DNA of 64,000 bases from Utricularia gibba (GCA_002189035.1 NEEC01000008.1:310001-374000), one strand, 5' to 3'. Shown: positions 1 through 62,399, counted from the stretch's first letter. Numbers and translations: made by a program. Notes: a model not told the origin generated them from the sequence alone.

Positions 1-4
1 GTGA

Positions 5-295
5 CATTTTAGTCACTATATCTCTTTCATTGCGATGTGTGGCTATGAAATTATGTGAAGTTTATTTTATCGTGAAATTTTAGTCATTGTAATGCCTTCA
101 TTGCAGTGTGTGGCTATTAAATTATACAACGCTTATTTTATTATGAAATTTGAGTCACTAAAATGCTTTCATTGCAGTGTGTGGCTATGAAATTTTAGTC
201 ACTGTAATGCTTTCATTGCGGTGTGTAGCTATAAAATTATACGAAATTTATTTTATTATGAAATTTTAGTCACTGAAATGCTTTCATTACAGTTT
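5..295. repeat. Degenerate tandem repeat (5 units, 44-71 bp apart), each carrying a TCACTGT-N12-GCRGTGT spaced palindrome
   Basis: Left arms start at 13, 84, 155, 199 and 270. Each is followed by a 12-nt spacer (e.g. aatgctttcatt) and a GCAGTGT/GCGGTGT-like right arm. Confidence 0.85.
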
Positions 296-335
296 ATGAA
301 TTTGAAAGTATCCATTTTCATTGTTATTTATGCAG

Positions 336-1842
336 ACATAAACACATCAAAAAAGTTGAGGCTTCGATTCAATATTCCTACAGAATATCAATTGTGGGAT
401 AAGGAAGAGGATGAAGAGATCGTTGGTGATATTCCAGAACGTGTTGGTCCTAGGGGTTTTGCTATCAGTACTGAGCACCTTAGATGTGACTTGTGTGTGC
501 CAGTGGTACCATTTATGTTGCAAGTTTTGACATGCCTTCAAATTCCATTTTCACATTTGACTCCTAAGTCAGTGGCATATATATTGGCATGTGTTTACAT
601 TGCTTGTGAGGAAAGCATTCCCCTAGAATCGTCTATTTTTTTGCTGTGAGCATGTGTAGTAGAATAAAGGATTCACCAAATTATGTGATAAAGGGTAAGT
701 CTACAATTAAATTAGTGAAAGGTCTACGAAGTGGCTATGATAGTTGGTGGAAAGTTTTGTATGGGTTTCTCTCTTGAAGATTTACCAAATGATTTCCCAC
801 GCACACTTCCAAATTCTCATCTTATTGGAAAACCACAAGGTATTTTATGTGTTAAACAATTTTTTATACTATGTTCTTTTATGAGAATTGTTCTGATTTT
901 ATTGATCTAATTTACTTATGCTTACTATTAGGTGTTGAGATGTTACCAAGGGATGTCGTTGATGAATTCATTGCTTTCTTTAAAGGACAGACTAGGTCAT
1001 TGACTACAATCTTACCTTCCATCTTTAGAATACGGGGCACAGCCAAGTTTTGGTGTGGGAAAAAAAGAATTACAAAGAAGGATGATGATGTGGATGATCA
1101 AAGTGGAAATGATGCTGATAATTTACATGAAGATGTGGCGGTTGACAATGAAACAAATGATTTGGCAGCTGAAAATGAGGCGTTGAAGCAGCAACTAAAG
1201 TGATATCAATCCAGATGGCCTTCTTTCTATGAATCAAGTAGTCATATTCCAACGGTGCGGAAATTAGTAGTATTCGACGTCAATGGGATTTTTGCTGATA
1301 TTATTTTTCATTCATCATCAACCATCAAAGGGCATCCAGATAAGCGGATTTATGGGCGAGCAGGTATGGTATTTATTTAGTATTTCACACATTTGCAACA
1401 TATAGTTAGTTGCTAATTTATTGACTTGACTTTATTGCATATGTTATATTTTCAGTGTTTTTAAGACCAAATGCTAGGGAGTTTATGGAATGGTGTATGC
1501 AACATTTTGATGTTGCACTATGGTCCTCATGTGGAGGGTAATATACAAAATATTATATTATCTTTTTTATATATATGTTTTACATGTTATTCTTTTTGTA
1601 ACAGTGCACAACTAAACCAAGTCGAATATTGGATGTTTGGCGAGAAGATGTCAAATTTGGCATTCATATGGGATGGAACGAAATGCATCACCACAAACCT
1701 TCGAGTCCTCAAGAAGCCAACAAGTATAGTTTTGCTGAAAGAGTTGCGAAAAATATGGGAGGATGATGTTTTTCATGGCCGATATACACATGGTAACACC
1801 TTGTTTGTAGATGATTCATCATACAAGTCTACAACAAATCCA
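336..1842 (+). pseudogene. Transposase_28-like/FCP1(NIF)-HAD fusion gene, copy 1 (premature stops, last exon missing)
   Basis: Translated segments KLRLRFNIP..HLRCDLCVP..SHLTPKSVAYIL, an acidic/coiled-coil linker, KLVVFDVNGIFADI, VFLRPNAREF..WCMQHFDVALWSS and LAFIWDGTKC..LKELRKIW..NTLFVDDSSYKSTTNP. In-frame TGA at about 647 and 1201; GT-AG introns at positions matching the other copies. Confidence 0.75.
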
Positions 1843-1904
1843 ATAATAATTTTAGTTAAAAATTTCATAAGTTAAATTTTATTTTTTTAGTTTAAATTAT
1901 ACTC

Positions 1905-2530
1905 TGAGAATTGTAATTGATGATTACAATGATCAGTAGAAATAGTTCATCATCGTTTTGCTTAATAAAGTATTATAAACATTTTCTCTAGTAACTGTAA
2001 TTGATGATTACGGTGATCCGTAGAAACAGGTTATCATTTCCCTATATTACTTTCAATTCTGGTAATTGTAATCTGTAATTACGGTGGCCGTAAAATTTAG
2101 AGATACAAACTATTACTCGAGTAATTTTTATTTTCTCTTTTATGCTTTTTCGGAACACTTTTGCTTAATAGACTACTATCACCATGTTTTCTAATCACTG
2201 TAATTGATGAATTATAGTGATCGACAGAAATAAACGATTATGGTTTTTCTTATATTACTTTTATTTGTGGTAACTATCATTGATGATTACAGTGATCGTT
2301 AGAAATAGGAAATTATTATTTTTTTATATTAATTTTCTTTTTTATAACTGTAATTGATGAATTGCAGTGATTGAAAGAAATATGTAATTATTGTTTTCTT
2401 TATATTAATTTCATTTCTAATAACTGTAATTGATGAATTGTAGTGATCGACAGAAATATGTAATTATTTTTTTCTTTATATATATTTTTTTATTTCAGAT
2501 AACTGTAATTAATGAATTACAGTGATCAAC
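1905..2530. repeat. AT-rich tandem repeat (~70 bp unit) with core TAACTGT-aattgatga(a)tt-RCAGTGA
   Basis: Repeated taactgtaattgatga(a)ttRcRgtgatc units; 12-nt spacer versions at 2195-2220 and 2345-2370, 11-nt versions elsewhere. Confidence 0.85.
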
Positions 2531-2879
2531 ATAAATAAAAAATATTAACATGAAAAAGTTAAATGAAACGATATTTATGATTTTTAATTTCATTTATTAT
2601 TTATAAAAGAATATATAATATAATTTGATTTTTCATTTTGTTTAAGTTATTTATTTTTCTATTGTTTAATTGTATATATTTTTGAATATATAATAATTAA
2701 ATAAAATATACATTATGAAAAATTTAATTTGATTTTTTTATTTAATATAATTTTTGAATTCTAAAAAATATATTTTAATAATATTTATTACAATATTTGT
2801 AAAAAGAATGTAATATATTTTTATTTTTTTGTAAAAAAGATAATAGTATTAAAATATGTTGTCAAAAAGAAATTCAAAA

Positions 2880-3001
2880 ATGAAAAAGAAAATCTGTAGT
2901 ATGGGTGGTTTTGACATGCAGTAGAGGTGAGATGCACACAGTGGATGGTTTTGGAACTGGGTTTTTTTGGAGTTGATGTATTTGGTAAAAACTCAGTAGT
3001 G
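2880..3001. mobile_element. Possible CACTA (En/Spm) right terminus
   Basis: Ends ...aaaactcagtagtg at 3001 (reverse complement CACTACTGAG), preceded by repeated gtggRtggtttt motifs. The partner end and TSD would lie outside the window. Confidence 0.3.
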
Positions 3002-3804: not shown

Positions 3805-4075
3805 TGTTAAAGCCTTGGACTTAGAGCAGGTTATTGGACCTAGTTTGAAGACAAAAAGAAGTATGACATGATCAGAGTAGAGTTCAACACCGGTGGGCAC
3901 ACATGGAGAACAAAAGCAAGGGAAAATAGGAGATGGCAACCTCCAGGTACTGCTCTTCCAACCTCTAGGCTTTAGTCCAAGTTTAAGCTCTAACCTTTGA
4001 TTGGTGGTAGGGCAGGCACTCTTAACGTCTAGTAGTTGGGTTGGGCTTGCTCTTCTTATTATAGATGATGGGCAC
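3805..4075 (-). repeat. Diverged LTR (3' LTR of older copy B), terminal CA lost
   Basis: Alignable to the LTRs at 12932 and 17385 (tgttaaagcc..ggacctagtttg..agttcaacacc..aacaaaag..gaaaatagga..gcaacctccaggt..ttgggcttgctcttcttatt). Confidence 0.7.
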
Positions 4076-4515
4076 TTAGGTAACTTGGTTTTATGGGTTT
4101 AACGGGTGTAAATCGTGTTTTGTTGATGGATTTACATAATTTGGGTTTAAATGAATACACGTTTGGTACGTGGGTATAAAATTGGGTTTATGGATAATTT
4201 TCATGGGAATTTACCAATACAGCCTTCCTCAACAATAAACTATTCGTCTTTATTACCATTTGTTTTCCCCTTCGTCCACCGACTTTCACACCCGATTGTC
4301 GCGGTGCTGCCGTTCGACGAGATCTCCCGATTTCACAAGTAATTGAGAGTGAAGAGCCATGGGTTAAGTCCAGATTGTATACTCCCTTTGTTGCACAGAG
4401 TTTCTCGTTTAAAATCCGTTGAATTTTGAGTCAATTTTACCGTTTACTTGTTGTAAGTGCTCGGTGTAGGTACTTTGTTCTTGCTGTTTTCTTTACTCCA
4501 GCACAGATTGCAGGT

Positions 4516-4659
4516 ATGCACAGCCCAATCGTGGTGGAAGACTCTCAGAAAAAAACGAAATGCGCCTGGAAGCCAGATGAGGAGAAAGACTTATTGCACA
4601 CTTTGAAGCAGATAGTGAAAGAAGGCTGGAAAATTGAGAATGGTTTTAGGGGTGGGTAT
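4516..4659 (+). pseudogene. Harbinger ORF1 Myb/SANT-like DNA-binding domain, truncated
   Basis: KCAWKPDEEKDLLHTLKQIVKEGWKIENGFRGGY matches the W..EE..LL..L......GW...NGF+.GY pattern of Myb_DNA-bind_3 proteins; no continuation found after the inverted repeat at 4681. Confidence 0.75.
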
Positions 4660-4680
4660 ATGTATTTTTTAAACACTTAT

Positions 4681-5378
4681 GTTTCTGATCGAACACTGAT
4701 CGCGGTGGCACCGCGTGTTGTAACATCTGGTGCCATCACTGGATTTGAAACCTTGTGTCTAAACGTGGTGCTTCGTAATATGCAACACCAATGCGGTGCT
4801 AGTTCATGACTACTCAATAGCAGCGCATTGAATGTGGCGGTAGTTGTAGCACCGCGTTTGCGAAAGAGTGCTCAACAACGAAGCACCGCACTTGTTCATA
4901 CGCGGTGCTTCCACCAACGGCGTCAGAACACTGTCTACCTTACACCGCATATATTTGCTAGATATATGCGGGTGTGCGCAGATAGTAGTTTGGCCTTATG
5001 TTGGACTCATGGGTTAGATGTATTTCACCTTCTAAGCATCCTTCAAGCAAATACCCTGTATTCCACATGAAAATGTAGGCGTAGGACGATTGTAGGTAAC
5101 TGGTATGAGCACCGTGCAGGGTAGACAGTGTTCTGACGCCGTTGGTGGAAGCACCGTGTATGAACAAGCGCGGTGCTTCGTTGTTGAGCACTCTTCCGCA
5201 AACGAGGTGCTACAACTACCGCCACATTCAATGCGCTGCTATCGAGTAGTCATGAACTAGCACCGAATTGGTGTTGCATATTACGAAGCACCACGTTTAG
5301 ACACAAGGTTTCAAATCCAGTGATGGCACCAGATGTTACAACACGCGGTGCCACCACGATCAGTGTTCGATCAGAAAC
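4681..5378. repeat. Long inverted repeat: 259-bp arms (4681-4939 / 5120-5378), 180-bp spacer
   Basis: Manual comparison of the arms gives about 7 mismatches; rich in GCACCGC/GCGGTGC motifs; no flanking TSD seen. Confidence 0.92.
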
Positions 5379-5440
5379 TTACAAAGTCAGCATACCATAG
5401 TTCACGCAAGATCCATGCAATTGCAAAGGTACATCATCCA

Positions 5441-7268
5441 TTACACAATAGCCTTGTAATGCTTCCACAATGGGTGTTCCTCGTCTATCGGACGTTCACT
5501 ACCCGTCGGCGATTGACGTGTGTGGGTACATCCATTACGTCAATGAGAGCTTCCAGGAACCACCTAATATCTCCCCCTCGAACCAGGGAACAATCATTGA
5601 CCGCGGTGTACTTGAAGGTGGTTGGGAATATGGCATTTTCGGGCTGTCCAATGTAAGCAAACAATCATTGGGTGCAAGATGGTGGAGAATGAGGGCGACC
5701 AGAAACTCACCGGGTTGTGTAGTGACTTGTATGGCGCATCATCGATGAGTAGCATATTAAGACGGTGATATTTTCCCTTGAACTTGGTGTTGGCGCCCCA
5801 TACATGATTCAAAACCTTAAGCTTAACCGTGTTGTTCCTGTTGTCGTGCACCGGATAACCTATGTCCACTGTCCTGGATCCATCCCATTGGAAGACGAGC
5901 TTGCTGGCTGCTGCAAGCCCTAGTAACCACTAGACCACATCGTGCAATTGTTCACTGAAACATGTTGTCAAAAAAAGGAAAGGTCAGCACCGTGCAGATA
6001 CCATTACCTGCTAATTGGTCGATCTTACCATCCTCTGGAAGACCAAATGGCGACGTCAAAGTGTTCCATGCAAAACTGTATCAACTCACATGCACCTGGT
6101 CGAAGATACACTACAACCACAACAAATAGTTCTGACACATGCACCAGATATTAAATGCATATGAAATACACCGTATTACCATTTCGCCCGTATATAACGG
6201 CATCCGGCTTCAATGCTCCCCACCTGACTTCACGATGATACACAATGTCCGCAAGTACACCATTGACGTCAAATATTAACAACTTACATGGTGGGGCTGC
6301 GTTATCACTCGACACTCCAACATATGGCCACCTTTGTTCATAACATGCAAGCCGACCACAGAGTTTAAGATTCTCTGCGTACAGTCTCTCCACTTCGATA
6401 TACTTTGCAGTGGCAACATCACACCCATCATCGTGTGTCGAGATCGTTTTTGGCCCATCCATGTTGCCCCTAATTTCTGGCTGCACATCTCCATCCTCTT
6501 CATGGGTCACCTCCTTAGGATCTTCATTCCTAATCTCACGTTGTCTACGGTGTCGAGGGGTTCCACACCACAAATGCTGTGTCCTAGGAGCATTGACAAA
6601 GGGGGGCAAAACGTCCTCTAGTGACTTTGTTATGCAAGAGAACAAATTCACAAACCTCCTTGCTGCACGTTTTGGCAATACCTCGATGCCTACAACGACT
6701 ACAACAACAAAGTCCATGAGTATTGTTGCAGACGACGTTAGAATATTCGAAGTAATTGTTTGTGATTACCTGATGAGTGTCCAACATTCTCTGACACTAT
6801 CAACGTTGTTGGCCATTCTGGAGTGGTGGGTGGGCATACCCATACAAAACTAGTCCACTAATCATCATATGCGCTTCTGATGTTTGTAACCAAAACCACA
6901 CCAGGTTTTCCATGAAGCGAGTAGTGCGGACTCCCCTTACATTGCACAGAAACAGAAACCGCAAAGAAGACACGCATTTCCGGGGGTATATCCCCCTCTT
7001 CACATATCTATAGAAATGCGAGTACGTGCGCCACATAATGTGGTGTAAGGTGGGAGAGTGGGATCTAGAGTGCAGCAAGTATCTGCACCAAGAAAGGGGG
7101 TGGGGGCAGTCGCAATCCACACCGAAAGTGCTTGGTGCTGACGGTGAAACTCGATGCTCCGACTCTGGACGGGGGTTCGGTGTCGAACGTTTCGCCTGGT
7201 TGTTTATCCCACATCACGTAACCGTCAGGAATTGAGAAGCAGGCATGTAGTTTCTCACACGTCAACAT
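5441..7268 (-). pseudogene. Transposase_28-like/FCP1(NIF)-HAD fusion gene, copy 2 (all exons present, frameshifts and stop)
   Basis: KLHACFSIP..KHFRCGLRLPPPPFLVQIL; PPCKLLIFDVNGVLADIV; VFLRPGACELIQFCMEHFDVAIWSS; KLVFQWDGS..LLIDDAPYKSLHNP; PENAIFP..GGDIRWFLEAL..HPLWKHYKAIV*. Confidence 0.8.
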
Positions 7269-8060
7269 CTACGAAAAACAACAGACGTAACTCATCTGTT
7301 TTGAAACGCTGAAGGCAAAGGTTCCTACCATCGCAACACTGTTGTGAAGAGGTTGTCAACCCATCTGTTTTCGCGGTGCTACTGTGCGTTTGCCGAAAGG
7401 ATGGAGGTGTAAGTGTGGAATTAATGAAGGTGTTTTGGAAAGTGTTCAATGTCAGGTGCCTTTAGTGTGCACAGGGGGGGTATTAATAGCGCTGGACAGT
7501 TGTCAACTGCGGCATTTTTTGCCAATTTTTTTTTGAAATTCGGAGCACCGGATAAGGCGGCACGTGGTGCTGCAATGTGCGTGGCGTAGCGTAGGCGTTT
7601 AGAAGCACCGCATATTACAGATCACGGTGTTTGGTGACTTTCAAGATTATTGTACTACCAATACCCTCGCTAATATGCACCAACTTGACACTCGTCTACA
7701 TCTTAAATGTTGACAGCACTGGATACGATGAAACACGCGGTACTACTAACAACTTTGGTATCATACTAGCCTCCGTAGCACCTCGTCTGAAGATCGCGGT
7801 ACTGGCTCCAATGCTCCACCATGTGGTACCATGTTACCCCATGGTAACACATGACACTATGGTACAATCCCCACACCATTTGCAGCAACAACCAAATACA
7901 ATGCAAACAAGTGTTCACGACGGAGTGTCAACTCGAGCTGAACTTGTTAAGGAGCAAAGCAAACAATTGTACTTAACAAATTCAATACAAACGACACGAT
8001 AGGTTCCGAACGAGAATCTAGGAAAACTACTAGCATCACAATGTCTAAAACAGTGCTACA

Positions 8061-9377
8061 TTAGCGGCGTCTGCGGGATGCCAGCCACTCGGTGTACATC
8101 CCCTCAGCTTGCTCGTCACGCCACCTACTCCATGCCTGATTTGAACCGAAAGATGTCGTGACGTCTTTTGCATCACTCATGTCCCCAGCTTCATCCTGGA
8201 AGTCCAATGGGACCTCATCCTCCAGGGGATCGACCACCATCTCCTTTCGAATAAGGTTATGGAGCAAAGCACATGCCAATACAATGCGATTCTGTGTGTC
8301 TACCGAATAGTGTGTATACCCAAGCTCGTTCGATCACATTTCTGGCTGATGCATGCCGCATGTTGAATAGCTCCTTCGCATTCTGAGGTACTCCATTTCC
8401 CTGGCCCCACTCCTTCAAGTGATAATAGACTCTATGGTATGGTGCCAAACAAGTGAAATATGTTCCATTATCACATATCCATTATCACATAGGTAATATG
8501 TTCTTGTGTCATCACGTATACATGGTACATGAAATCACTGGAATCACATGCGCAAGGGCTAAACAAGTGAAATACCTGGGCGTAAAAGACGAAAGACGTC
8601 GGATCGTGAGAGTGCATCGTTTAGCACCCGACTATTTGCAGCAGACCCCTCCCACCCAGCAATCACATATATAAATTTCATTTGTTCATCACATACACCC
8701 AACACGTTGATGGATATGACACCCTTTCGATTTCTGTACCTTGCAGCATCACATTTGTTAACTCGTATACTGATATATGTACCATCTATGGACCCAACAC
8801 AACCTTGCAAATACATAATCAATGTTAGATACATTCTTAAAAAGAAGCACGAAAGATGTGTCAATCTGAAGTGTTTGAACTTTCCTTCGGATGCACGTTC
8901 TCCAGCAACTACTGGAGTCTCTAAGAGCACCTCATGGAGGCAAAGCACCGCATGCAACACCTTTTGAAAGCACCGGGACACAGTCTCGGTGCTCCTCCCG
9001 TAGACATGTTTCTGCACCCGCATTTTATTATGATGATCTAATATTCCTAAAAACATGCAAACCATCTCCGGAACCATTACATATTTTCCAGCCTTTAAAC
9101 TAGAACGATTTTTTAATAGGCTACATAAAATAACCAAGGCATCTCGGCTGATTCTCAAGTTCTCAATGGATGCACTGTTGACATCACTCACCAACCTACT
9201 AATATACTCAACTTGTCTAGGAATCTTGTGTGTAAGTGAATACCTGCGTCTCCCCCTATATCCCCTATGGTATTTTTTCCAATGTAAGTATACTAACACA
9301 TTCATCTGCACCAAATATTTGGTCAAAAATGCTGCTGCCGCACTCAAGATGACATGACCCTCCATGAAAAAATCCAT
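8061..9377 (-). pseudogene. PIF/Harbinger DDE transposase (DDE_Tnp_4 type), degenerate
   Basis: GCVGSIDGTYI..YRNRKG..NVLGVCD..MKFIYVIAGWEGSAANSRVL, YHLKEW..KELFNMRHASARNVIER and CALLHNLIR; frameshifts present. Confidence 0.9.
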
Positions 9378-9845
9378 GTCCCCTCAATAGTCGAAAAAAT
9401 CGAGCAAAATAAATCCACACACACAACAACACGGATTCTGAAATTGGAAAGTCACAGATAAAAACCCACTATGTGATACTGCCATGGTTGGACAAGCGCG
9501 GTGCTACCGTGGACCAACCCACCAAGGACAGAAAGCACACTTACCGAAAGACCTAGTTTATTTGCTCCCAAAGAAGACGCGACGCCACCGGCAAATCACG
9601 AACAAAGTCTGGGTTGTAGATCTGCGTTCAAATGTGGTTCACGCAAGGGCAAAAGTGGAAGCGCCGAGCTAAGTTTAGCTAACCCCCCCCCTAGGTTTAG
9701 CTAAACCCTTTTCCACGGGTTCCCACCTGGTTTATGGACAACACGTGGGTTTATTTTTACCCACCTGAAACCCACAAACCAAACATGGGTTTATGTCTAA
9801 ACCCACGTCGCAACCAACCTAAACCCAACAACCAAACGCGCCCTA

Positions 9846-12800: not shown

Positions 12801-12931
12801 TAGATGAAGTGGTTGTGTCCAAATACCATTGTGTACAAGCATTTCTTTAATCTGTCCATGGGATAGTTGGGTTGTGGCACAGGAGCATTAAATACGAGGC
12901 TTGGGTCCTTCCTAACAGATGGCAAGGAATG
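9846..12931 (-). pseudogene. Degenerate gag-pol of chromovirus copy B (5' gag and PBS missing)
   Basis: Paralogous to 13227-16980: DPSKLEVVTTWLLP..LKSFLGLVSYYHRFIKDY (RT/RH), VLVDTDSIHNFI (protease), integrase remnants; gag stops abruptly at the middle LTR. Confidence 0.85.
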
Positions 12932-13226
12932 TGATAAGGCTTTAAATCGAGAACGAGTTAAAGGACCCAGTTTGCACAAAACGAAGAACATAGTAGCAGA
13001 AAAAAGTTCAGCACAAGGTGCTCATTAAATGAGTAGCAACAAAAGAAAGAAAATAGGGAAGAGAGCAGCCTCCAAGCGGCACTCCGGTAGCCTCTACGCT
13101 CTGAGAACTCGTTCAATTCCAGCCTCTCCCCAACGATAGAGTATGCGACTTAAGATTCTACATTTGGGTTGCATTTGGAGTTGGACATGTTCTTCTTCTT
13201 GTAAGTTGTGGGCTCGGTCCACATCA
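12932..13226 (-). repeat. LTR (middle), 295 bp, TG...CA
   Basis: tgataaggctttaaatc...ggtccacatca, clearly similar along its length to 17385-17689. Confidence 0.9.
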
Positions 13227-17342: not shown

Positions 17343-17363
17343 GGTGTGATTTCCGGATGAGGG

Positions 17364-17380
17364 CCTTTCCTCTAGCGCCA
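17364..17380 (-). other. Primer-binding site TGGCGCTAGA(GGAAAGG)
   Basis: Lies 4 nt inside the 5' LTR, starts with TGG, and is not the tRNA-iMet PBS TGGTATCAGAGC. From recall it fits the plant tRNA-Asn 3' end (..CTAGCGCCA). Confidence 0.6.
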
Positions 17381-17384
17381 AAGA

Positions 17385-34330: not shown

Positions 34331-36174
<1,844 letters not shown>

Positions 36175-41480: not shown

Positions 41481-41531
41481 TAATGGAATCTCTAAACATT
41501 CTAATATTTCTTCTAAAAAGGGCAACAATGG

Positions 41532-44452: not shown

Positions 44453-44638
44453 AACCAGATAGTCTCTCTCAATGATCATGAGCATTATAAATGTAATGAG
44501 ACGGAATTGCATTACGAATGTTCTGCAAAGCGAAATCAATGTTTCAATAAAAAATGCGGCACAAATATGGTCTTGAAATTTAGAAACAAGTTGCGGTTGA
44601 CGTCCCTTCTCTCAACAAATGCTATGTTTCATAGCATA

Positions 44639-46420: not shown

Positions 46421-46669
46421 TGTGTACTGCTACTTCAAAATCTCAAAAACCACCTCACAAAAATTTTCTCCAACTCTTTGCCAACTTGCACCTTTTACCT
46501 TTCCAGGCAATTATCACGATGATTTACACTCTACGAAAATGCATTTGTAGTATGTCGAGCGGCGGGTTGCAGTGTATGTTATCGTGGGTGAAAAGTGTGT
46601 TTTCATTAGGGTGGTGAGGCTTTCAATGAATATATCTAATATTATTAAATTCTAAAAAAAAAAAAACTA

Positions 46670-46807
46670 CCAACCCATGTCAACCCGTGACACGAGACAG
46701 GTCAGCCTGTCTAACCCGTCAACCCGTATTCGCCAAGTCAAACATCTCATTCTTTACCCCGCGGGTTCGATCCGTGACCCATCGAGTCGGACCTGTGCCC
46801 AACTCTA
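46670..46807. mobile_element. hAT-type right terminus (family B)
   Basis: Ends GTGCCCAACTCTA (reverse complement TAGAGTTGGGCAC), with AACCCG subterminal motifs distinct from the AACCG motifs of family A. Confidence 0.65.
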
Positions 46808-50505: not shown

Positions 50506-53500
50506 TTCCCCCCCCCCCCCCCCTTAAGAAGGTTTCATCTTGAAACCTTACCTGCATACAATTCAGGGTGTTGCAGTCTCATTTGGACTTCTATCTCCCA
50601 TGTTGCATCTTCAAGGCCAAGGTTTGCATAGTGAATCTTCAACCACATAATCAGGCTTCCTCTCAAAGTAGTCATCTTTCTGCCTAAAATATGTAATGGG
50701 TGTATTCAATAGGTGAGGTTGTTTGCAATCCCGAACTCATCCCCTCGTATCTCCCGCTCTGCATCTAGTATATGCTTCCTTAGCTGCGATATATGAAAAA
50801 TATCATGCATTCCTGACAACCCTTTCGATAAAGCCAACCTATATGCCAGCTCCCCAATGCATTCTGTTATCGCATGTGATCCAATGAATCGGGATCCTAT
50901 CTTTCCAAACTTCGTGCTCCTAGTGAGTTCTCACTGAGGTGATAGTTGCAGATAGACCCTATCTCCCACTTCAAAGTCCATCAGCCTACGGTTGATGTCT
51001 GCCCAACTTTTTTGTCTATCCTGTCCAACCTTAAGTATCTCCTTGATCACCCTTCCCTTCTGTTCTGCATCTTGGACCAACTCAAGTCCCAATAGTGCTC
51101 GTTCCCCCACCTTGTCCTAGTGTAGAGGGGTCTTACATTTCCTCCCATACAAGGCTTTGTACGGAGACATCCCCAAGCTTGATTGATATCCATTATTGTA
51201 CACAAACTCCACCAACTAGATGCACTTGTCCCAATCTCCTTGGAACTCCAAGGCGCAAGCCCGCAATAGATCCTCTACTGTTTGGATCGTTCATTCAGAC
51301 TGCCCATCCGTCTGGGGGTGCATCGCGGTGCTCATGTGAAGCTTGCTGCCCAATGCTTCTTGGACTGCCTGCCACAACCTAGAGGTGAACCTGATATCAT
51401 GATCAGAAACAATGCTCATTGGTAACCCATGCAATCGTACTATCTTTGCCATGTACTCTCGAGCGAGACGGATGATGCTCCACTTGGAATGAATTGGCAG
51501 AAAGTGAACACTCTTTGTGAGGCGATCTACCACCACCTAGATCGCATCCTTCCCCGTGCGGGTCCGAGGCAACCCTGTCACAAAATCCATGATGACCATC
51601 TCTCACTTCCACTCAGGAATACTCAGGGGTTGTATCAGCCCGCCTAGACATTTGGTGTTCTATCTTGGTACGTTGGCAGACCTAACACTTTCCAACAAAT
51701 GAGGCAATACTCCGCTTCATCCTTGGCTACCAGAAGCTCCTCTTCAAGTCATGATTCATCTTGGTGTTCCCGGGGTGCATAGTATATCCCGATTCATGCA
51801 CCTCCCTCAGAATACGCTCCCACAACGTCTCTAAATCAAGTACCCATACTCTCCCATGCGCCGTGATTGCCCCATATGTTCTTATAGCGAAGGGAGCACA
51901 CTATCCTCACCTTGGGCCATCTTGATCTCAGCTAGTAGGTTAGGCGTCGCATGGACGATCATGGTCAGCATCCCCTCTGATACAACCTCTATCCCCATTC
52001 GTTCCATATCTGAGCACAATTCCTGAATTGGAACACTTCGGATTAGGCCATCTGCCACAACATTTGCCTTCCCAAGATGATAATTTACCATCAAGTCATA
52101 GTCCTTAATCACCTCGAGCCACCTATGTTGCCGAAGATTGAGTTTCCGCTGAGTAAAGATGTACTTCAAATTGTGGTGATCCATATAGAGCTCGCACTGC
52201 ACGCCTAAAGGTAGTGTTGCCATGCCTTCAAAGCAAATATAATTGCAGCCAACTCCAAGTCGTGCACTGGGTAATTCCTCTCGTGATCCTTTAATTGCCT
52301 AGAGGCATAAGCGATGACCCTGTCGCCCTGTATCAATACCTCCCCAAGGCTTTTACCACTAACATCCATATAGACCACATAACCCTTCCCTTTCTAAGGT
52401 AGCGCTAGGATAGGGGCTGTGGTGAGCTCCTTCTTCAACCCTGTGAAGCTCTCCCGGCATTGATCCGTCCATGTGAACATCTTCTGTTTTTGTAATAGCT
52501 TCGTCAGTGGCTGGGTTTTCTGAGAAAAAGATTTGATAAATCGTCTGTAGTAGCCAACAAGGCCCAACAAACTCCATACATCCCCAACTTTCTTAGGTGT
52601 CGGCCACGCCACCACCACCTCCACCTTTTTTGGATCCACCTTGACCCCCTTGCCACTGATAATACGTCAAAGGAAGCTAATACTCAACAAATAAAACTCA
52701 CATTTTCTCACTTTAGCATATAGTGTCTTCTTGCGGAGCTGCTCAAGCACAACCCACAGGTGTTCGTCATGGGTGTCTTCGTCCAGAGAGTACACTAGTA
52801 TGTCGTCTATGAAGACAATCACAAAGCTATCGAGATAAGGTTGGAATACCCTGTTTATCAAGTCTATAAAGGCTATAGGGGCGTTGATGAGGCCAAAAGG
52901 TAGCAGCACCACGAACTCAAAGTGCTCATATCATGTCCGAAACACCGTCTTAGGAATGTTGACCTCTCGTATCTTCAACTAGTGGTAGCCCGACTGTAAG
53001 TCAATCTTGGAGAATACCATCGCCCCCGTCAATTGGTCAAAGAGATCGTCAATCCGCAGTAGTGCATACCTATTCTTGATTGTCACTTTGTTGATCTCCC
53101 GATAGTCTACACATAATCTTAAAGTCCCCTCCTTCTTCATGACAAATAGCACCGGGACACCCCATGGAGATGTGCTAGAGTGTATAAATCTCTTAGCCTG
53201 AAGATCCTCCAGTTGTGCCTTAAGTTCCTTCATCTCTATTGAGGCCATACGAAAGGGTGCTTGTCAGATTGGTGCGGCCCTTGGAAGTAGTTCTATTTTG
53301 AACTCAATCTCCCTATCTGGCATTTGACCAGGAAACTCCTCCAGAAAGATGTCATTGTACTCCTGGATGAGGGCTCGAGCCCTCTCTGCTGGTGCACCTT
53401 CACTGTCTGGTTGGGGGACGTAGGCCAGCAAATCACAACCTATCTCGCTCATCTGCCTTGTCACTTCATGAGACCCACTGTCTAGGTGATACTCCCATTT

Positions 53501-54520
53501 CCGCCCCATGCTATCTTCTAGTTCTACCACCCTCACTGCACAACCAATCCGTGCCTTATGTTTTTGTAACCCATCCAATCCCAGAATGACATCCATTTCC
53601 CTAATATCCAGCCCCTATCAGCATTGCTACGGCCTCCATCTCGCCCCAATTGAATGGTGACTCCCTGATACCGCTTCTTACCCAACAGCACCCCACCACC
53701 TAGGGTTCTAGCTCTGAATTCTATTCGCAATTCCTCCCCAACCAAGCTCAACCATTCCGCACATTGCTCCGATATAAACGAGTGTGTAGCTCCAAAATTA
53801 AATAAGGTGATAACTTCAGTATTAAAGAGTTTGATCGTAACTATGATGGCCTTGTCGTCGCACTCTGCCTCAGTGCGGTCAAGGTAGTAGACACGCTCAC
53901 TATTGTGGTTGCCCTGTTGCACTCCCTGTCCTGTCGCTTGTGTGGGGCAATTCCTTGCGAGATGTCCACCTTGCCGACATGAATAGCATACTCCTGCCCG
54001 ACACTCCCCTATATGCCTCCTTCCACACTAGGCACATTTCGGATTGGGGTTCCATCTGCCTTCCCTTCTTTCTTGATTCACCACTTCAACCTTCCTTTCG
54101 CCGGTGCTCATATACTTGTTTCGATCCTCATCCAATGGTGCCAACTCAGTTTCAACTAGCAAAGCTGACCTCAGTAATTCAACCATTGTCTCTGTTGCCA
54201 CTGAGATGAGTCTCTCATGAAGTCGAGTCATTAGAGCCTGTCGAAACTTCAGCACCATCAATTGCTCTCCGCCTTCCAATCCAAGCATCACGTGTGACAG
54301 ACACTGATAGTGAGTGTGGAAGTCGTATATTGTCTCGCCACTTTGCTTTGGAAGTATGCTGGTCCGATGATATATGAATATCGACTGGAGCCCCGTTGCC
54401 ATGCTCAAGTTTCTCGCCAATTTGGATGTGGCCATGTTATTCCATCCCTTCCAGATCGATATCCTGCAAAACATAAATTCACCAAAGACCCCTATAATAC
54501 TGATTGGACATTGAACCATG
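50506..54520 (-). mobile_element. Degenerate Ty3/gypsy chromovirus (Tekay/Del-like) gag-pol; 5' LTR not seen
   Basis: FGATHSFIS (protease), [23 protein letters not shown] and [13 protein letters not shown] (RT), DHHNLKYIFTQRKLNLRQHRWLE (RH), VDRLTKSVHFLP..HPQTDGQSE (INT), EDATWE (chromodomain). Confidence 0.9.
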
Positions 54521-55749
54521 TTGCACGTATAGTTTTATAGGCATCTAGGCACACTCACATTCTCTAATTGCATGAGATACTTATAGTGTCTGAGGCGGTG
54601 TACATGGCATTATATAGGCCGCATGCATTATTGTATATTGGAAGAAGAAGAAAGAAGGGTGATGGATATTAGAGGTGCGTCTGGTTCCGAACTGTATGGC
54701 TCCAATGAACCGTTGATTCCCAATCGTGGTTCGCCATGGGCAACAGTTCCGTTTCGGTTCAGAAACGCATACCCAAACCTTGAACTAAATTGAAACCGGA
54801 ACAAAGATTCACGAACCAAACTGTAACCAGAACCGATCAGTTACTATGGGAATACGTTTTCTAGGCACCCATATGAACCATTATGGGTGTTTGGCAGTGA
54901 AGTTTTTAACAATTATTAATTTTATATATTTTAATATTATCAAATGATATATGTAACAATATTAATTTTTGTATTTCATTAGATATATTATGTGATATAC
55001 TATGTTAATTTATAAAATACCTTAGTTTAGATTACTTGATAAAATAACCTAATAAAGTATAATTAAAATTAGTATAATTTGTGACTTAAATAAATGAAAT
55101 AAATTATTAAAATGATTAAATTATTAAAATTTGAATATACATATGATAAAATTAAATTTTTTTAAACAAATACAACAAGATTATAAATCATATAAAACCA
55201 ATAAAATTATTATTTATATATTTATTTTTTAAAATGAATATTTTTGTACAGTTGTTTTTTATAATCTCTTGTAAATATTGCGTATTTTTCAAATTAAAAT
55301 CAAAACGTCATCTATTTTATAAAGTGTTTCTAAATGTCATTTATTTTTAAAACAAAAAGTAAAAAGGATTGAATAGATTAAATTTAAAAATTTACATCAC
55401 ATATTTATCACAAAATTTACATCACAAAATTTACATCACATAGTAAAAAGGTGTCTGAAGAAGATTCTAGACACACTCAAGAACGTATCAGAGTGTCTGG
55501 AAATTCGACAACCATGACCCTGAAGGACACGCTGCCCAAGCACACTTAACAGAGCTTATACATGTTCATATGTGTTCATATTGATCTAGAGGATCGCTAT
55601 TCACTGGAGCATATTTCACACAATGAAAATAGGAATTCAATGAATTTAATCGTAACGACATAATTGTCTCATAGAAAAAAAGTTAATGAAAGTATTCCAA
55701 CTACAACATAATTGTCAACAAGAACTAATATTAGAGGTTTCCTCTATCA

Positions 55750-57830
55750 CATAGGCATGCATAATACTCCCATAATGCATGTCCTTCACGTATGTGGAGC
55801 TGTCCTATTCGGTTGACATTAATATAGCTTGAAACATCATGAGCATATCGTAACTCTTCAAGGAAAGTTCGCATCTCACCATCAACATTTAGTGATGCAT
55901 CATCTCTATTAATATGTGAATAGGTACTTGGAAAAACATGATTATTTTTCTAAAAAATGTAGGGTTAGTTTTGATATATAACCAAGTGTATGTTAGAGGA
56001 GAATAACAAAAATGGCTTACCAGATTTTTCATTGACTTGAGAGGTGAGTCATCAATCAATAAGGTATTGTGACGATCATATCTTGTGTTCAATCCATTAT
56101 TGACAGCCCATATACGACTCAACTCTTTGATGTAGACCGTGTTGCTAGGATTGTTGTGAACACGTGCATCTGTGTCCATAGTCATTGATTGGTCCCTCAA
56201 GAAAATGAGTTTATCGAATAACGAAGGTGTAAAGACTCATTTAGTAATTGCTTGCATCTGCATCCTACAAAAGAAATCTCTTACAAGTATTTGTGCAATT
56301 CTAAATACCAACAAAAAAAAAAAAGATGCAACACATGTATCCACTGTGGGATGACCACAAAGCTACATCAAAATTATCCAAACACCAACTAATAAACTCA
56401 TGGGCATATGAATATAGAAAGATTGCATATATTACACTAAAAACTACCTATGATATTTCACAAAATGTTACTGCATATAACACACAAAAATAAATGTTGT
56501 GTTAATGTACCTGATCGACCATATATGATTTTGTTTAGAGGGATTCGTGACCTTGACGGTCTAGCCCTATATACGATGTATGCAAGCACATCATTTACGT
56601 TCAAGATAATCAGCTTTCATTGAGGTTTAGACGCACTCAAAGAGGGTCCAATATACGCTCAACCGCTTTCATACCAATCCAACTTATAGCGAAGCTCTTC
56701 ATTCTCCTTTCCTATCATCCACATCATTGAAACCATGCATGTGCTCATCCCTTCAACATCATTGCCATCTTATGTCCTCTCATCCCTAGACATGTCTTTA
56801 TGATACTGTAGGATTCTTCAACACACCACACCAATATCGTTTTATCCTCAACGCATCCACAAATGTTGGTAAAATATCAATAAAATTCCTTAGCATACTT
56901 GATAAGAGTATAAGATCTTTTATATCTCTCTTATGTAAGATATCAAATCTTATAATAAAATAGAATTATTATGAATAAATTCAATAAAAATATTCAATAA
57001 AAGTATTGAATATATTCAATAGTACTATACTCGATAAATATACACTTAATAAGAATACATTAAAAAAAAATTTAATAAAAATATTAAATAATAATATATT
57101 GAATATGAATATATTTAAAAGATATTCAACAAGAATAGATTGAATAAAAATAGATTAAAAAAAATTCAATAAAAATATTGAATAAGAATAGACTGAATAA
57201 AAAAATTCAAAAAAAATTCAAAAAGAATACATTGAATAAAAATAGATTCAAAAAAAATATTCAATAAAAATATTGAATAAGAATAATTCTAAAATAAATG
57301 TAATAAGAATAGATTGAATAAAAATAGATTTAAAAAAAATATTTAATAAAAATATTGAATAAGAATATAATCAAAAAATATTCAATAAAAGTATTGAATA
57401 AAAATATTCAACAAGAATAAACTCAATAAGAATACATTTAATCATAATAGATTCAATAAAAACATTCAATATGAATATTCAATAAAAATATTAAATATTT
57501 TTATTCACATTTCTTATACCTATACAATGAAAGATTTACCCTTCACCTTGCCTACTTCACTTAAATTAGGATGCATTTGAGGAAACTTGGCTTCCATTGG
57601 ATGACATATCCAAACAAAATTTGTCCATCATTCTTCAAATTCTCTTCTCACATTCTTCATCAACACCAACTTTTTTTTTTCTATTTAGGGTATAGCGGTT
57701 CCTATTTAGAGTCCTAGAGTAAACACTCATAGGAAAGAAATAACAAGGATCCACCTCAAGAGACAACTCCTCACAAATACTCACAATGGCCAACACATAT
57801 AAAATAGATCTTAGAGTCAAATGGGACAAA
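55750..57830 (-). pseudogene. Transposase_28-like/FCP1(NIF)-HAD fusion gene, copy 5
   Basis: SHLTLRSILYVLAIVSICEE, KLIILNVNDVLAYIVY, VYIKELSRIW..NTLLIDDSPLKSMKN, HVFPSTY..DASLNVDGEMRTFLEEL..HALWEYY. Confidence 0.78.
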
Positions 57831-58399
57831 AAAAACCTCTAAACATTCTAATATTTCTTCTAAAAATGGCAATAATGGTAAGTGCAAACCACAATGAAAA
57901 TGCTCCATGCTTAAGGCAAACCCCATTCGACTCACAGGCAATAATGGTTCTCAATTTTTCAGAAGTTTGCATCTACAAAACATCCATAGGTATTGTATAC
58001 AAAATCAAACTGCAATAATTCGACAAGGTATTTCAATTTGGAATATAGATCAGTAACCTATGGTAAAAAATAAATCACTTACCTTGTTTGATTTAAACAA
58101 TACTCCAAGTAGACGGTGGGCGATTAGAGTTGTCTTAATTGACAACATAGGGAGTAGGTAAAGTGGGGACAGGGGTAGTGATGTGTAATGTGGTGTATAG
58201 GTGTATGGGGATTTGGTTTAATTAACCAAATCATAGGCTAATCACTCGGTGATAACCCATGTTTTCCCCACACCCTAATCTAACCCCTACACCTCACACC
58301 TCGCAGACAGATTAGACAAAATGTGCCTTATCAACGATGTCCGATTGGGCCCTTCTCCTTAGGTGCTTGAGGCCAACCTTTGATTCTCCCACACTCTTT

Positions 58400-59097
58400 T
58401 AGGGCTATATGGTACTAAAGATTATGCTGGTAAAGAAAACGTTGCAAAAAACAGAATCAGACCTCAAATTAAATGCTGAAAAACATAGTAAGACAGTCAC
58501 ACACGTAGGACTTGCGCAAGCAAGGCTTCACCGCAGATCCTCAGCCGCAAGTGCTCACACGCGCATGCTCGACTCTAAACAAAAAAAGTTGATGAAAAAC
58601 GAAAGGAAAGGAATCCAAAACATGGTAGACTCGACTCTAAACCCTATATTGACTTTCTAGTCGTCCACAATGACTCTATCCTTTTGATCTTCGCGTTTGG
58701 ATCTTTATATAATGGTAGGGACTTGTCGGGATTTCTTGATGGGCTCATATCAAATCTTTTATCCGGATCTTCTAAGATTTGATACAAATCTTCTAGGATA
58801 AGATCCAAATTTTTTAAGATAAGATGCGAATTTTATCTTATCCGAGAATCTTTGACTGAGTCTTCATCCAGATAAACTGAATCTTTGACTCCATCAAAGT
58901 AGCTCGAAAATCCCCCAAATTATGCCAAAATTATCCTGAAAAATCACAAAACAAACTTTCCTTCCAGAAAGATCAAAGTGGTATGAAATATATAAAATTC
59001 TTCAAAAAACATAAGGAAAGTGGGATAAAAAGAATGCAAAACCCATCTAAGTGAATCCTAAAAATCACAAATATATGTGACACAAAATCACTTATCA
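58400..59097 (-). mobile_element. Probable truncated Athila-like LTR fragment inside hAT A2
   Basis: The minus strand begins TGATAAGTGATTTTGTG at 59097; no matching TSD found, left boundary approximate. Confidence 0.3.
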
Positions 59098-59239
59098 AGA
59101 TACATTGTTTGAATCATACAATCTTAATTAAAAGCATGAATACAACATTTCATTATAAAGTAATAGTATTTCATAGAGCACACAATATTTCTAAATTAGG
59201 AGTTTTCAATTTCATCTTCACTTGAACTTAAGGACAACG

Positions 59240-60620
59240 TTTAATTTCATTTCATTGCCTCCAACTAATCCTTTAGACAAATGCATGCCTCCAAGGTCTC
59301 TGCATTCAATTTGGAGCGCTTGTGATTAAGAACTTGTCCCCTTGCGCTAAACGCACTTTCAGATACCACTGTAGATACTGAAGGTGTTATAAGATATTTG
59401 ACCATTCTAGCCAAGATGGGGTAAGTAATAGATATTGTTTACGCCAACTCAATATATCAAAGTTGTCATCATCAACACCCTCAACAATAGGAGTATTATT
59501 GTAAAGTGTAATTTGATCAATAAAATTTAATGAAGATGATGAAAGGGATGACACAAATGAGCTATGTTCCTACGAATAATGTCTATCGGATTGCAACTGC
59601 CAAACATCGTATTATTATATGTTTTAGGAATAGGAACATTAAGATCACTGTATTTAGAAGCATAAAAGAAATATTTCAAAAATTTATTTTTCATATTTTG
59701 CACTTCATTTCCCAAAAAATCACAATCACCTTGATGATCATAAAAAGTAAACGAAATTTTACAAACATATGATAATAGAAGTTGAAAAGTTGGATAATAA
59801 ATATCACTCAAAATTTTAGTACAAGAATAATAATCCTATTTCGCACTAAACCTCTTATTTTTTCAAAAATAGAATGAGTCAATAAATTATAACCTGTAAA
59901 AAATTCACAAAATTCAATAAAAATATTTTCATAAGGAATCAAAAATTGTAACATATTATATATAGAATTCTATTTAGTTAGACAATTATTTTTAAATTTA
60001 CAATAAGAGATATTTATTTCTTAACAAGTCATTTTAAAATCATCTCATCTATTAGATATAGTTCTAATTATATTAACTAAATCACAAATAGGAGTTAAAA
60101 AAATTTCACATTCTTTCAAATCACTTTGAACACACAAATTTAAGATATGATAAATGCACCTAGTGTGGAAAAAAAATGTTATTCAACATAGCATTCATGC
60201 TACTCTTCAAAATGTCAATAGCATTTGTATTTACACATGCATTATCCAAAGAAATAGAAAAAATCTTATCATATATTCCATAAAATGGTGTGACCTTTTC
60301 AGCAATTTTAGCAATAAAAAAACCATTATATGGTGATGTCAATTCTTAAAAAGCTATAATTCGTTTTCGCATACACCAAGAATTATCCATCCAAGAACAT
60401 GTAACAACAATATAACTCTCATTGTTACAACATTTCCAACCATCACAAATTAAACAAAAATTACATTAGAAAGATTTAAAAGTAGAAATTAAGGAGTCAC
60501 ACATGTTTTTAAAATCCTCAAGTGCAATATGACGCACGGTTTTCTTAGTAGTACCGCAATTGAGGTTGTTTCAACATATCATCAAAAGAAGCTTTTTCAA
60601 ATAATGAAGATCCAAAATTA
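59240..60620 (-). pseudogene. hAT transposase of family A (catalytic part, DUF4413-like region, dimerisation domain), degenerate
   Basis: ICDGWK..YIVVTCSWMD..W.MRKRIIAF, ISLDNACVN, MKNKFLKYF, YPILARM..VSTVVSESAFSA..LN.ETLEACICLKD. Confidence 0.88.
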
Positions 60621-61179
60621 TTAAAAAAATTTGAATTGTTTAATAATTTTCTATTGATGTTATATATTTTATATTTATTAATCTCACTATAATTTTATAA
60701 TTTATAATATTTTACTGAATATATTGTTGGATATACTATATTAATTTATAAAATGTCTTATTTTAGAGTACTTTGTAAAATACCTCAATAAAGTATAATT
60801 AAAATGAATATAATTTGTTACTTAAATAAATGAAATAAATAATTAAAATAATAAAGTTATTAGATGTTGAAAATTCATATGATAAAATTAAATTTTTTGA
60901 AATAAATACAATAAGATTACAAGTCATATAAAACCAATAAAATTATTTTTTATATTTATTTTACATTTTAATAGATAGATTTTATGTAATCTTTTGTAAA
61001 TATTGTGTATTTTTTAAATTAAAATAAAAATATCATCTATTTCATAAACTTTTCCTAAACTTCATCTATTTTGGAAACAAAAAATAAAAATAATTAAATA
61101 GATAAGATTTATAAAATTAAATCACAAAAAAATATAAATAACAAATTTTTGTCTTTCCAATTTGCTTACCTGGAGCGGG

Positions 61180-61395
61180 AACCATTTTCCAGACACCAAC
61201 ACAAGCCAATGTGGGTGTCTAAGAAGAGCATCTGAGACCATTCCCCAAGCACCCACATTTGCTTGCATAAGTGTCTCGATAGGGCAACTGAGACCATTTT
61301 CTAGGCACCCACAACTCTTGTGGGCGTGTCTGGGAAGAGGTGCTTGAAAAGATTTTCCAAGCATCCACTTCTCTCGTGTGGGTATCTGAGAAAAG
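61180..61395. repeat. Four tandem units with exact 56-bp period carrying (A/G)CACCCA-N11/12-TGGGTGT-type palindromes
   Basis: Left arms at 61193, 61249, 61305 and 61361; spacers 12, 12, 11 and 11 nt. Confidence 0.85.
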
Positions 61396-62399
61396 TGTCT
61401 AAAATCATATACATTTATTCAATATTTATAGTTTTTTTAATTTTTTAATCCGAACCGTACGGTTCACGGTTCGGAACTATGAACACTACGGTTCAACATG
61501 GGTCGGAACCATCGATTCCACGGTTCCAATTATGTCGAACCGAACCAAAACCGTACGGTTCTGGTTCCGAAAAATTGGAGCCGTAGAGACATTGATCTCC
61601 TGGAACTGAGCCGGAATTAGAATCGATGGTTTTGGTTCGAACCGAGCCCACCTCTATTGGATATCGAGGTGGAGATGCAGAGCCGATAGCTTATGCGGTA
61701 AAATGAACCATTATGTAAATATGAGTTAGATCATCTAAACTAATTTCTAATATCTTGTTTGTTTTAAAGTCGTACAATTAGACAGATTTGGTGCTAGGGA
61801 TCAAGAAGCAACGTGGGTGTATGAGGGCCTGAGCCAGTAGCTTAGATGGAGCCAATCGCTTGTCACGTAGCAGTCACCGCTACCTGGTGATGCTGCACAA
61901 GTCCACATGGACTAAACATACGAGGATTTCAATCCACAGATGTTTCAGTAGTATGTGGCACCAATGAGCATACCATCAATATGCAAGGCTCCTTCTTTCT
62001 AAGTACAACCACCACTCTTGGCTATCACTCCGTCATATCCTTGGCCACCTCCTTACCCCTAGTTCATGATACCCCATGTCGCATCGAGTCAGTCTAGTAC
62101 TGGGATGGGACATGCGTATTGGAGATTACCATTTCCACCATCATATAGTGGTCCACATGATGCGACATGTCCGTCATCATCACGACGATGCAGGCGTGGG
62201 TGGATGTATTTTGTCATAATAAACCATGATGTAAATCATTATCGAATAAGTTACTTTTATGAAAGTAGTTTGAAAAAAATCATATAGAAAATATCAAAGA
62301 TAAATAACTTTTAATAGCAATTAATCAAAGTTGTTCAAACCATAAAATATCGAATTTATCAAACTATTCTGTTGATGGTGAATTCACTCCCCAATCCAT

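Follow-up and report, generated by a model that had tools for sequence, protein, structure and literature searches.

Five copies of a single spliced gene, each of them broken, occur in 64,000 nt of plant nuclear DNA from Utricularia gibba (GCA_002189035.1, NEEC01000008.1:310001-374000; this whole stretch is referred to as the window), and the same gene is found inside DNA transposons of unrelated superfamilies, hAT and PIF/Harbinger. It is called the cargo gene here, and its copies are numbered 1 to 5 (Table 1). The best explanation, to which we give a probability of roughly 0.7, is that what recurs is an accessory gene of transposons, and neither a mobile element of its own nor a module of gene plus hairpin array; in its predicted product an acidic coiled-coil linker connects a Transposase_28 (TRP28) domain to a NIF/FCP1-type HAD phosphatase-like domain. 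The gene lies inside the elements and moves with them in a very abundant Harbinger family and in hAT family A, and probably also in a second hAT family, here called B.

The copies were detected by an all-against-all blastp comparison of the stop-free segments from the six reading frames of the window, which links the five loci at E-values down to 1e-21. For analysis only, the pieces of each copy were joined with an X at each break and the resulting models aligned. In this alignment five exons and four intron positions are identical in all five copies, so that the claim of one cargo gene in five copies, made by an earlier reading of the window (hereafter the sequence-only reading), is borne out by both the blastp links and the common introns. 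Exon 1 encodes LRLRF..P..Y.LWDK...VGP.GF.VS..HFRCGL.LP..PFL.E.L.CLE.P.SHLTP., and exon 2 encodes G.E.LP......ILPPFVNA....WCG, followed by an acidic/coiled-coil stretch and then KLIIxDVNGVLADIVY. Exon 3 encodes VFLRP.A.EFI.WC..HFDVA.WSS, exon 4 terminates in LLIDDSP.KS..NP, and exon 5 encodes N..FP..Y......L..G.E...FLE.L. The motifs kept across copies are KL[IV][IV]xDVNG[VI], VFLRPxAxEF..WC...FDV.[IL]WSS and LLIDDSP.KS..NP. None of the five copies is intact: all are relics in silenced transposons, disabled by frameshifts, in-frame stops or the loss of parts. Copy 1 has a frameshift in exon 1 near 609-631 and an in-frame TGA at 1201-1203, has lost the donor of intron 4 and is missing exon 5, while exon 1 of copy 2 contains frameshifts and has lost ~25 residues of the TRP28 domain; the damage to copies 3 to 5 is listed in Table 1.

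Domain scans were done exon by exon, on stop-free stretches of at most 204 residues compared with ~450-500 residues for the full protein. Exon 1 matches Pfam Transposase_28 at 25.7 bits in copy 4 (E 1.4e-5) and 22.4 bits in copy 1 (E 1.4e-4), against a cut-off of 26.2 bits. Atlas assigns exon 1 of copy 4 to Transposase_28 with 191-199 shared features and a score of 0.97; PF04195 accounts for 79 of 100 matches. The N-terminal domain is thus placed, as probable, in Transposase_28/TRP28 (PF04195) or very close to it. NIF (PF03031) is the sole Pfam family matched by exon 3 of copies 1, 2 and 4, always at profile positions 37-62, with scores of 17.6, 17.3 and 12 bits (E 0.0033 for copy 1, 0.0041 for copy 2, and 0.17) against a cut-off of 21.8 bits; one exon 4 likewise matches NIF (E 0.012). 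In Atlas, exon 2 of copy 2 gives NIF-type clusters at the top with a score of 0.74, which is a lead only, and the exon 4 alignment, used as a profile against PDB, returned only noise. HAD motif I, DxDx(T/V), reads D-V-N-x in four copies and N-V-N-D in copy 5; its second aspartate is therefore Asn in all five (an invariant column), and the pair of aspartates that the motif calls for is absent. HAD motif IV, hhhDD, is retained as LLIDDSP. The second Asp of HAD motif I is the general acid/base, and since Asn takes its place, the protein could have been a weak enzyme or a pseudo-phosphatase. The C-terminal domain may accordingly be described as NIF-like, and possibly non-catalytic.

Copy 2 lies inside a decayed PIF/Harbinger element. 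The gene set of this superfamily is represented by a DDE_Tnp_4 transposase and a separate Myb/SANT-like gene, the latter recognised by Atlas only, as Pfam alone gives no match for the exon at 4516-4660. Copy 2 sits between the Myb-like exon and the transposase as a third gene of the element. Both ends of the element carry GGGC... and GGGTTTA-type subterminal motifs; they align only weakly, the position of the left end is uncertain (4069 or 4010), and the flanks offer no clean TWA pair. Logan contigs from four public DNA runs of this organism were placed on 4010-9843 at a likeness of at least 80%, giving 1220, 483, 2824 and 3810 contigs in the four runs, most of them 80-95% alike; these numbers indicate that the Harbinger family is highly repeated. 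Summed word depth, a quantity distinct from copy number, is 142-448 in one run (X1) and 613-1939 in another (X5) across the gene bins at 5375-7324, compared with 206-327 and 1422-2177 across the transposase bins at 8105-9469, and 204-367 and 1089-2292 at the left end (4010-4594). Diverged contigs also bridge the 3′ flank to exon 5 (5017-5617, 5146-5634) and exon 1 to the upstream spacer (7044-7429). Because the gene reaches a depth like that of the transposase and is joined to its surroundings by these contigs, it is a regular part of the Harbinger family and not an accident of one copy.

The large inverted duplication beside copy 2 has a different history. In the contigs of other family copies, loose ends are found near 4076, 4659 and 4990, and depth dips at 4790-4984. 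As these contigs part from the element at 4659 and rejoin it at 4990, with the dip between, the left arm (4668-4945) is private to this copy and replaced the remainder of the Myb gene. The 268-bp palindrome beside copy 2 is therefore a peculiarity of a single element. As separate observations on the same contigs, C>T and G>A differences number ~250 each in run X1, compared with ~50 for transversions, and there are many internal deletion joints (e.g., 4659>6055 and 7589>9395). Both features fit an old, methylated and silenced family with deletion derivatives.

Copies 3 and 5 lie in two members of hAT family A, A1 and A2 respectively. A2 is a bona fide hAT element, having inverted ends, an 8-bp target duplication (ATGGATAT / TTGGATAT, identical at 7 of 8 positions) and a Dimer_Tnp_hAT dimerisation domain at 59268-59438 on the minus strand (Pfam E 1.6e-12; 47.5 bits, cut-off 21.4), and copy 5 is located well inside it. 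Positions 38299-41531 of A1 match 54670-57878 of A2 and, past a solo long terminal repeat (LTR), 42839-43035 match 57874-58002. Since A1 and A2 occupy different sites and hold the gene in the same internal place, the gene has moved with hAT family A.

The left end of A1 sits inside a 240-bp LTR fragment (38059-38298), of the same family as the solo LTR but in opposite orientation, which constitutes the insertion site of A1. An LTR of this family thus lies both under A1 and inside copy 3, so its retrotransposon was active before and after the hAT insertion; the continuation of the interrupted LTR past A1 was not found within the window. The inverted repeat 38053-38259 / 42638-42844, which had been taken for element ends, is in fact made up of these two LTR copies. 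A single composite hAT element spanning 38299-46807 was also considered and rejected, as its flanks (ACTTTGAT and GTGTAATA) differ. An AT-rich segment of ~500 bp is present twice in A2, in direct orientation near each end (54898-55401 and 60632-61126), and once in A1 (38533-39024), the copies being 77-82% alike.

Copy 4 is probably carried by hAT family B. It is found between the N-terminal half of a BED-finger transposase, cut at 44284, and a hAT right end, with 365 bp separating the 5′ end of the copy from the terminus at 46807; a host zf-MYND gene follows from ~47300. The transposase is ~45% identical to the A2 transposase remnant (blastp), and the right end is preceded by subterminal repeats of the CAACCCGT type, three of them exact and one a TAACCCGT variant. 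A candidate left end at 36345 was discarded, since 24% of random windows score equally well. For copy 1, only the right part of the carrier falls in the window, and its superfamily may be CACTA or MULE.

The sequence-only reading had placed copy 2 between the Myb open reading frame of a Harbinger element and its DDE transposase, copies 3 and 5 in hAT family A, and copy 4 between a different hAT transposase and a different hAT end. All of these placements hold: the first by the Atlas and Pfam matches, the second by collinearity together with the A2 ends, duplication and dimerisation domain, and the third by the BED-finger transposase and the end at 46807. Its statement that the orientation of the gene relative to the transposase varies is likewise correct, the two being on the same strand in the Harbinger element and in A2 and convergent in hAT-B.

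Table 1. Coordinates of the cargo gene copies (c1-c5; E1-E5, exons), their carriers and associated repeats in the window (A1 and A2, copies of hAT family A; a point marks features listed without strand).
Feature	Position	Strand	Description
Cargo copy 1 (c1)	350-1842	+	E1 350-762, E2 931-1365, E3 1455-1535, E4 1606-1842
Cargo copy 2 (c2)	5488-7268	-	E2-E5 open; NIF match in exon 3
Cargo copy 3 (c3)	39474-42945	-	First coding exon split by solo LTR; several frameshifts
Cargo copy 4 (c4)	44642-46442	-	Frameshift in E1; acidic coiled-coil part of E2 lost
Cargo copy 5 (c5)	55734-58015	-	Many frameshifts and stops
Array upstream of c1, 71-bp units	1-328	.	Imperfect hairpin per unit, ACTGTAAT-type core
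Array downstream of c1, ~76-bp units	1900-2543	.	Hairpin ACTGTAATTGATGAATTACAGT per unit
Candidate right terminus, carrier of c1	2992-3001	-	Ends CAGTAGTG at 3001; reverse complement CACTACTGAG
PIF/Harbinger element, decayed	~4069-9843	.	Left end near 4069 (alternative 4010); right end ...AAACGCGCCC at 9843
Harbinger Myb/SANT-like gene (ORF1), first part	4516-4660	+	Atlas Myb_DNA-bind_3 score 0.93, 190 shared features
Inverted duplication	arms 4668-4945 and 5114-5391	.	Arms 96% alike; right arm alone matches the family
Harbinger DDE transposase remains	8040-9377	-	Pfam DDE_Tnp_4 E 2.3e-7, above cut-off (ORF 8559-9377)
hAT-A1	38299-43035	.	Left inverted end TAGAGGTGGG at 38299; collinear with A2 up to 43035
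Solo LTR, 1307 bp	41532-42838	-	TGTTG...CAACA (own orientation); 5-bp duplication AATGG; in exon 1 of c3
hAT-B transposase, N-terminal half	43282-44283	+	zf-BED E 1.7e-6 (Pfam) and start of catalytic core; cut at 44284
Hairpin array, 56-bp units x2.7	44284-44433	.	Unit GCACC(G/A)C...GCGGTGC; starts exactly at the transposase cut
hAT-B right end	46660-46807	.	Terminus CCCAACTCTA (reverse complement TAGAGTTGGG) at 46807
hAT-A2, complete	54670-61656	.	Ends TAGAGGTGCG (54670) and CCCACCTCTA (to 61656)
hAT-A2 transposase remains	59268-60560	-	Dimer_Tnp_hAT, and likeness to hAT-B transposase at 60048-60465

The central proposal of the sequence-only reading was that palindrome array and gene travel together as a hitch-hiking module. 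A mobile array-plus-gene unit of this kind, passing between transposon families either as a hitch-hiker or as an unrecognised element nested by chance, would account for the short hairpin-repeat array that accompanies the gene in each lineage at a distance of no more than a few hundred bp, and for the GCACCGC...GCGGTGC core common to the arrays of copies 2 and 4 despite their different carriers. Sensitive blastn between lineages, however, aligns the gene body alone (e.g., 44846-46404 with 343-1896 at 57%, and further pieces of copy 2 with each of copies 1, 3 and 4), while flanks and arrays do not align. In the same comparisons the gene is not enclosed by inverted ends, a target duplication or Helitron ends common to the lineages, and thus has no common borders; all five copies lie in transposons. 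The two findings that the sequence-only reading named as grounds for refuting it, an independent element boundary around the module and copies mostly outside transposable elements, are both absent. The arrays are also differently placed, occurring in both flanks of copy 1, in the 3′ flank of copies 2 and 4, and in intron 1 and the 3′ flank of copies 3 and 5.

The arrays, which had been regarded as part of the module, are not homologous between lineages, and their motifs recur elsewhere in the carriers. The arrays of copy 1 are built on the ACTGTAAT core, which has ten matches in the window compared with 2.65 expected, nine of the ten in 201-2523. In the Harbinger element, hairpins of the GCACCGC type are scattered over the non-coding parts (GCACCGCR occurs 12 times inside the element), with GCACCGC found away from the array at 4300, 7372, 7605, 8945 and 9497. 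Copies 3 and 5 have an AT-rich 13-mer array in intron 1 and GGTGTC...GACACC units, the latter also present at the far end of A2. The GCACCGC...GCGGTGC-type motif occurs 17 times in the window, compared with 0.83 expected, and 15 of the 17 are in the Harbinger element or the array of copy 4; the best alignment between that array and the Harbinger element is 16 nt long (E 0.44), and the common core, found post hoc, is 8 nt. The large palindrome beside copy 2 is private to one element, as described above, and at 36-45% protein identity between lineages any transfer would at best be ancient. A mobile module is thus the least probable of the explanations considered here. Part of the original proposal does stand, namely that the gene is present in unrelated superfamilies and was retained under selection (omega 0.34, see below); the module does not.

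A further observation concerns the array of copy 4. The open frame of the hAT-B transposase runs into the 56-bp array at the point where likeness to hAT stops, and the GCACCGC...GCGGTGC core of the array is that of the Harbinger element and not that of hAT-B. The array at 44284-44433 may represent filler that a Harbinger-type donor supplied, on the basis of one 8-nt motif. Copy 4 and its array could together be a Harbinger-derived fragment; this is a lead from the same post hoc comparison, with only the 8-nt hairpin core in common.

Protein identity is 36-45% among the lineages represented by copies 1, 2, 4 and 3/5, and 70% between copies 3 and 5, in line with the earlier statement that the copies are diverged except for 3 and 5. 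The maximum-likelihood tree is a star with branches of ~0.7-0.8 changes/site, in which the copy 3/copy 5 pair (100/100 support) is the only resolved group and the two hAT families are not grouped. Synonymous sites are saturated between lineages, which makes the deep ratio of nonsynonymous to synonymous rates (dN/dS, or omega) uninformative. With deep divergence, a star tree and saturated synonymous sites, there is no sign of recent movement between families, and lineages only 36-45% identical imply that any transfer is ancient.

Between copies 3 and 5, dN/dS is 0.34 (bootstrap 0.22-0.54). Reading the same aligned blocks out of frame yields 0.78-0.98 in four controls, and 0.44 in a fifth, which shares wobble positions with the true frame; differences at codon positions 1, 2 and 3 number 23, 23 and 43. 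The ratio and its frame controls together indicate that part of the hAT-A divergence accumulated under purifying selection on the gene. This bears directly on the view that the copies are neutral debris, scattered by nested insertions and rearrangement in a transposon-rich region and without any role. All five copies are indeed broken, exons and introns of copies 3 and 5 show similar identity, and the region is visibly rearranged, with a solo LTR in copy 3, one truncated transposase and two missing element ends. Such a view is nevertheless hard to reconcile with the selection signal and its controls, with intron positions and HAD motifs that are kept though synonymous sites are saturated, with the family-level depth of the gene in the Harbinger contigs, or with its identical internal position in two hAT-A copies. 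We therefore consider it highly improbable that the gene never had a role.

The star-like tree with its ungrouped hAT families would also be expected if a host gene of the same architecture had been copied separately by different superfamilies, in the manner of Pack-type elements, and the retention of introns is what capture at the DNA level predicts. No copy outside a transposon is present in the window, however, and no relative was found in the protein library searched with exon 2 of copy 2. TRP28 has been reported from transposons only (PMC11963269), so a host gene with TRP28 would itself need explaining, and Pack-type cargo usually consists of fragments without selection, compared with an omega of 0.34 here. 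Independent captures are for these reasons an improbable origin, if a better one than neutral debris.

If the cargo gene is instead an accessory gene of its carriers, the fusion of TRP28 and NIF-like parts would have arisen once, since the architecture and intron positions are common to all lineages. The gene would then have passed between transposon lineages long ago through DNA-level capture from element to element, e.g., by nested insertion followed by aberrant excision, or by template switching during gap repair. In its carriers, the TRP28 part might bring the protein to DNA or chromatin, and the NIF-like part might act on a phospho-serine target, e.g., the RNA polymerase tail, by binding or dephosphorylating it. 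Transcription or silencing of the carrier element could thereby be altered, to the carrier's help.

Several results weigh against the accessory-gene explanation or limit its reach. Exon identity between copies 3 and 5 (85%) is close to that of their introns (78-87%), and so much of their divergence is neutral decay. The assignment to NIF comes from matches of individual exons, all under the Pfam cut-off, and the function proposed above is one that we infer. For the Harbinger family, summed contig depth does not equal copy number, and no single contig reaches from gene to transposase. The right end of A1 was not found, nor was a left end of hAT-B within the window, and as a result the membership of copy 4 in hAT-B follows from its position only. 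HMMER with exon 2 of copy 2 against a library of 1.84 billion proteins, the sole search of this kind, returned one low-complexity match and no relative, and with it no copy in another species, no host ancestor and no intact copy. No RNA run is listed for copy 5 or for the Harbinger stretch, and with all five copies broken there is no sign of present activity.

The host genes of the window comprise a PPR gene (27587-29809), a receptor-like kinase gene, an NPF-type transporter gene, a gene for a PP2A catalytic subunit ending near 36171, and the zf-MYND gene already mentioned. Transposons lie between them, including Ty3/gypsy elements at 9847-17670 and ~50700-54500. The first of these, with integrase, RNase H and reverse transcriptase domains, begins 3 bp past the Harbinger end, and its 9847-13221 portion matches 13244-17670 at 72-88% (blastn), a duplicate structure that suggests two related copies, nested or tandem. 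The cargo-bearing transposons themselves occur in adjacent pairs: the carrier of copy 1 ends at ~3001, ~1 kb before the Harbinger element with copy 2, and A1, with copy 3, abuts hAT-B, with copy 4.

Only a handful of the accessory genes in plant DNA transposons are understood, chiefly MURB, VANC, ULP1 genes and the Harbinger Myb protein. Selection, the presence in two or more superfamilies, the fusion of TRP28 to a phosphatase-like domain and a very abundant Harbinger family suggest a common answer to one host barrier, and make the cargo protein a concrete candidate for affecting transcription or silencing. With this gene, TRP28 would be placed outside retrotransposons for the first time, and the gene would represent a natural case of gene passage between transposon lineages. 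A literature search found no paper that describes the gene, or that joins FCP1, NIF or a C-terminal domain (CTD) phosphatase with such transposons.

Among known systems, Pack-MULE and Pack-TYPE elements (PMC8903248) likewise hold host-derived, intron-bearing sequence between transposon ends. Their cargo consists of varied fragments in non-autonomous elements and is rarely selected, whereas here a whole gene recurs beside transposase genes with omega <1. MAIN / MAIL1 and PP7L (PMC7156037) offer a loose parallel, in that a transposon-derived domain is paired with a phosphatase-like protein in transposon silencing and gene control; they differ in combining a PMD with a PPP-type phosphatase, in being host genes and in having no sequence relation to the cargo protein.

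In Retand Ty3/gypsy elements, TRP28 is an antisense accessory open reading frame with predicted DNA binding (PMC11963269). No similarity to TRP28 outside transposons is reported in that work, and DNA transposons are unmentioned. The Retand protein and the N-terminal domain of the cargo protein would belong to the same or a close domain family, are accessory and not catalytic, and often stand next to tandem arrays. Unlike the Retand gene, the cargo gene is carried by DNA transposons, is a spliced gene of five exons and appears to be fused to a phosphatase-like part. The comparison with VANC of VANDAL, a non-TIR MULE (i.e., lacking terminal inverted repeats), is one of analogy only: VANC is an anti-silencing accessory protein that acts on short motifs repeated over the non-coding stretches of its own element family (PMC13317346), and the cargo lineages each have their own arrays of short motifs, but VANC has no sequence relation to the cargo protein. 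If this analogy were pressed further, TRP28-NIF proteins might form an ancient, undescribed class of VANC-like helper proteins, swapped between transposons (hAT, Harbinger, and MULE or CACTA) and having a DNA-targeting domain in common with Retand. The TRP28 part would then recognise the lineage-specific hairpin arrays (ACTGTAAT, GCACCGC and those of hAT-A), the phosphatase-like part would act against silencing on the polymerase tail or a chromatin factor, and the association of array with gene would reflect co-evolution instead of co-mobility. We regard this extension as unlikely, though it deserves more credence than a series of independent captures.

The closest precedent is provided by ULP1 (Peptidase_C48) genes, which are found in both orientations in MULEs (Kaonashi / KI-MULE) and five grapevine CACTA families (PMC2528002). 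Benjak et al. ascribe to the ULP1 domain a special 'affinity' for transposons (PMC2528002), and ULP1 has been linked to anti-silencing of the VANC type, whose targets are short motifs in the non-coding stretches of related elements (PMC13317346). As with the cargo gene, a domain of a host-type enzyme is carried as an extra gene by more than one cut-and-paste superfamily, in either orientation, and has been conserved for long. ULP1 is a cysteine protease, compared with the NIF/FCP1-like HAD fold predicted to be fused to TRP28 here, and neither hAT nor Harbinger, the superfamilies shown here to carry the cargo gene, is reported to carry ULP1 in these two papers (PMC2528002, PMC13317346). Set beside these systems, the cargo gene is best read as an old, once-selected accessory gene, now dead at all five loci, and as a variant of the accessory domains that are shared among DNA transposons.

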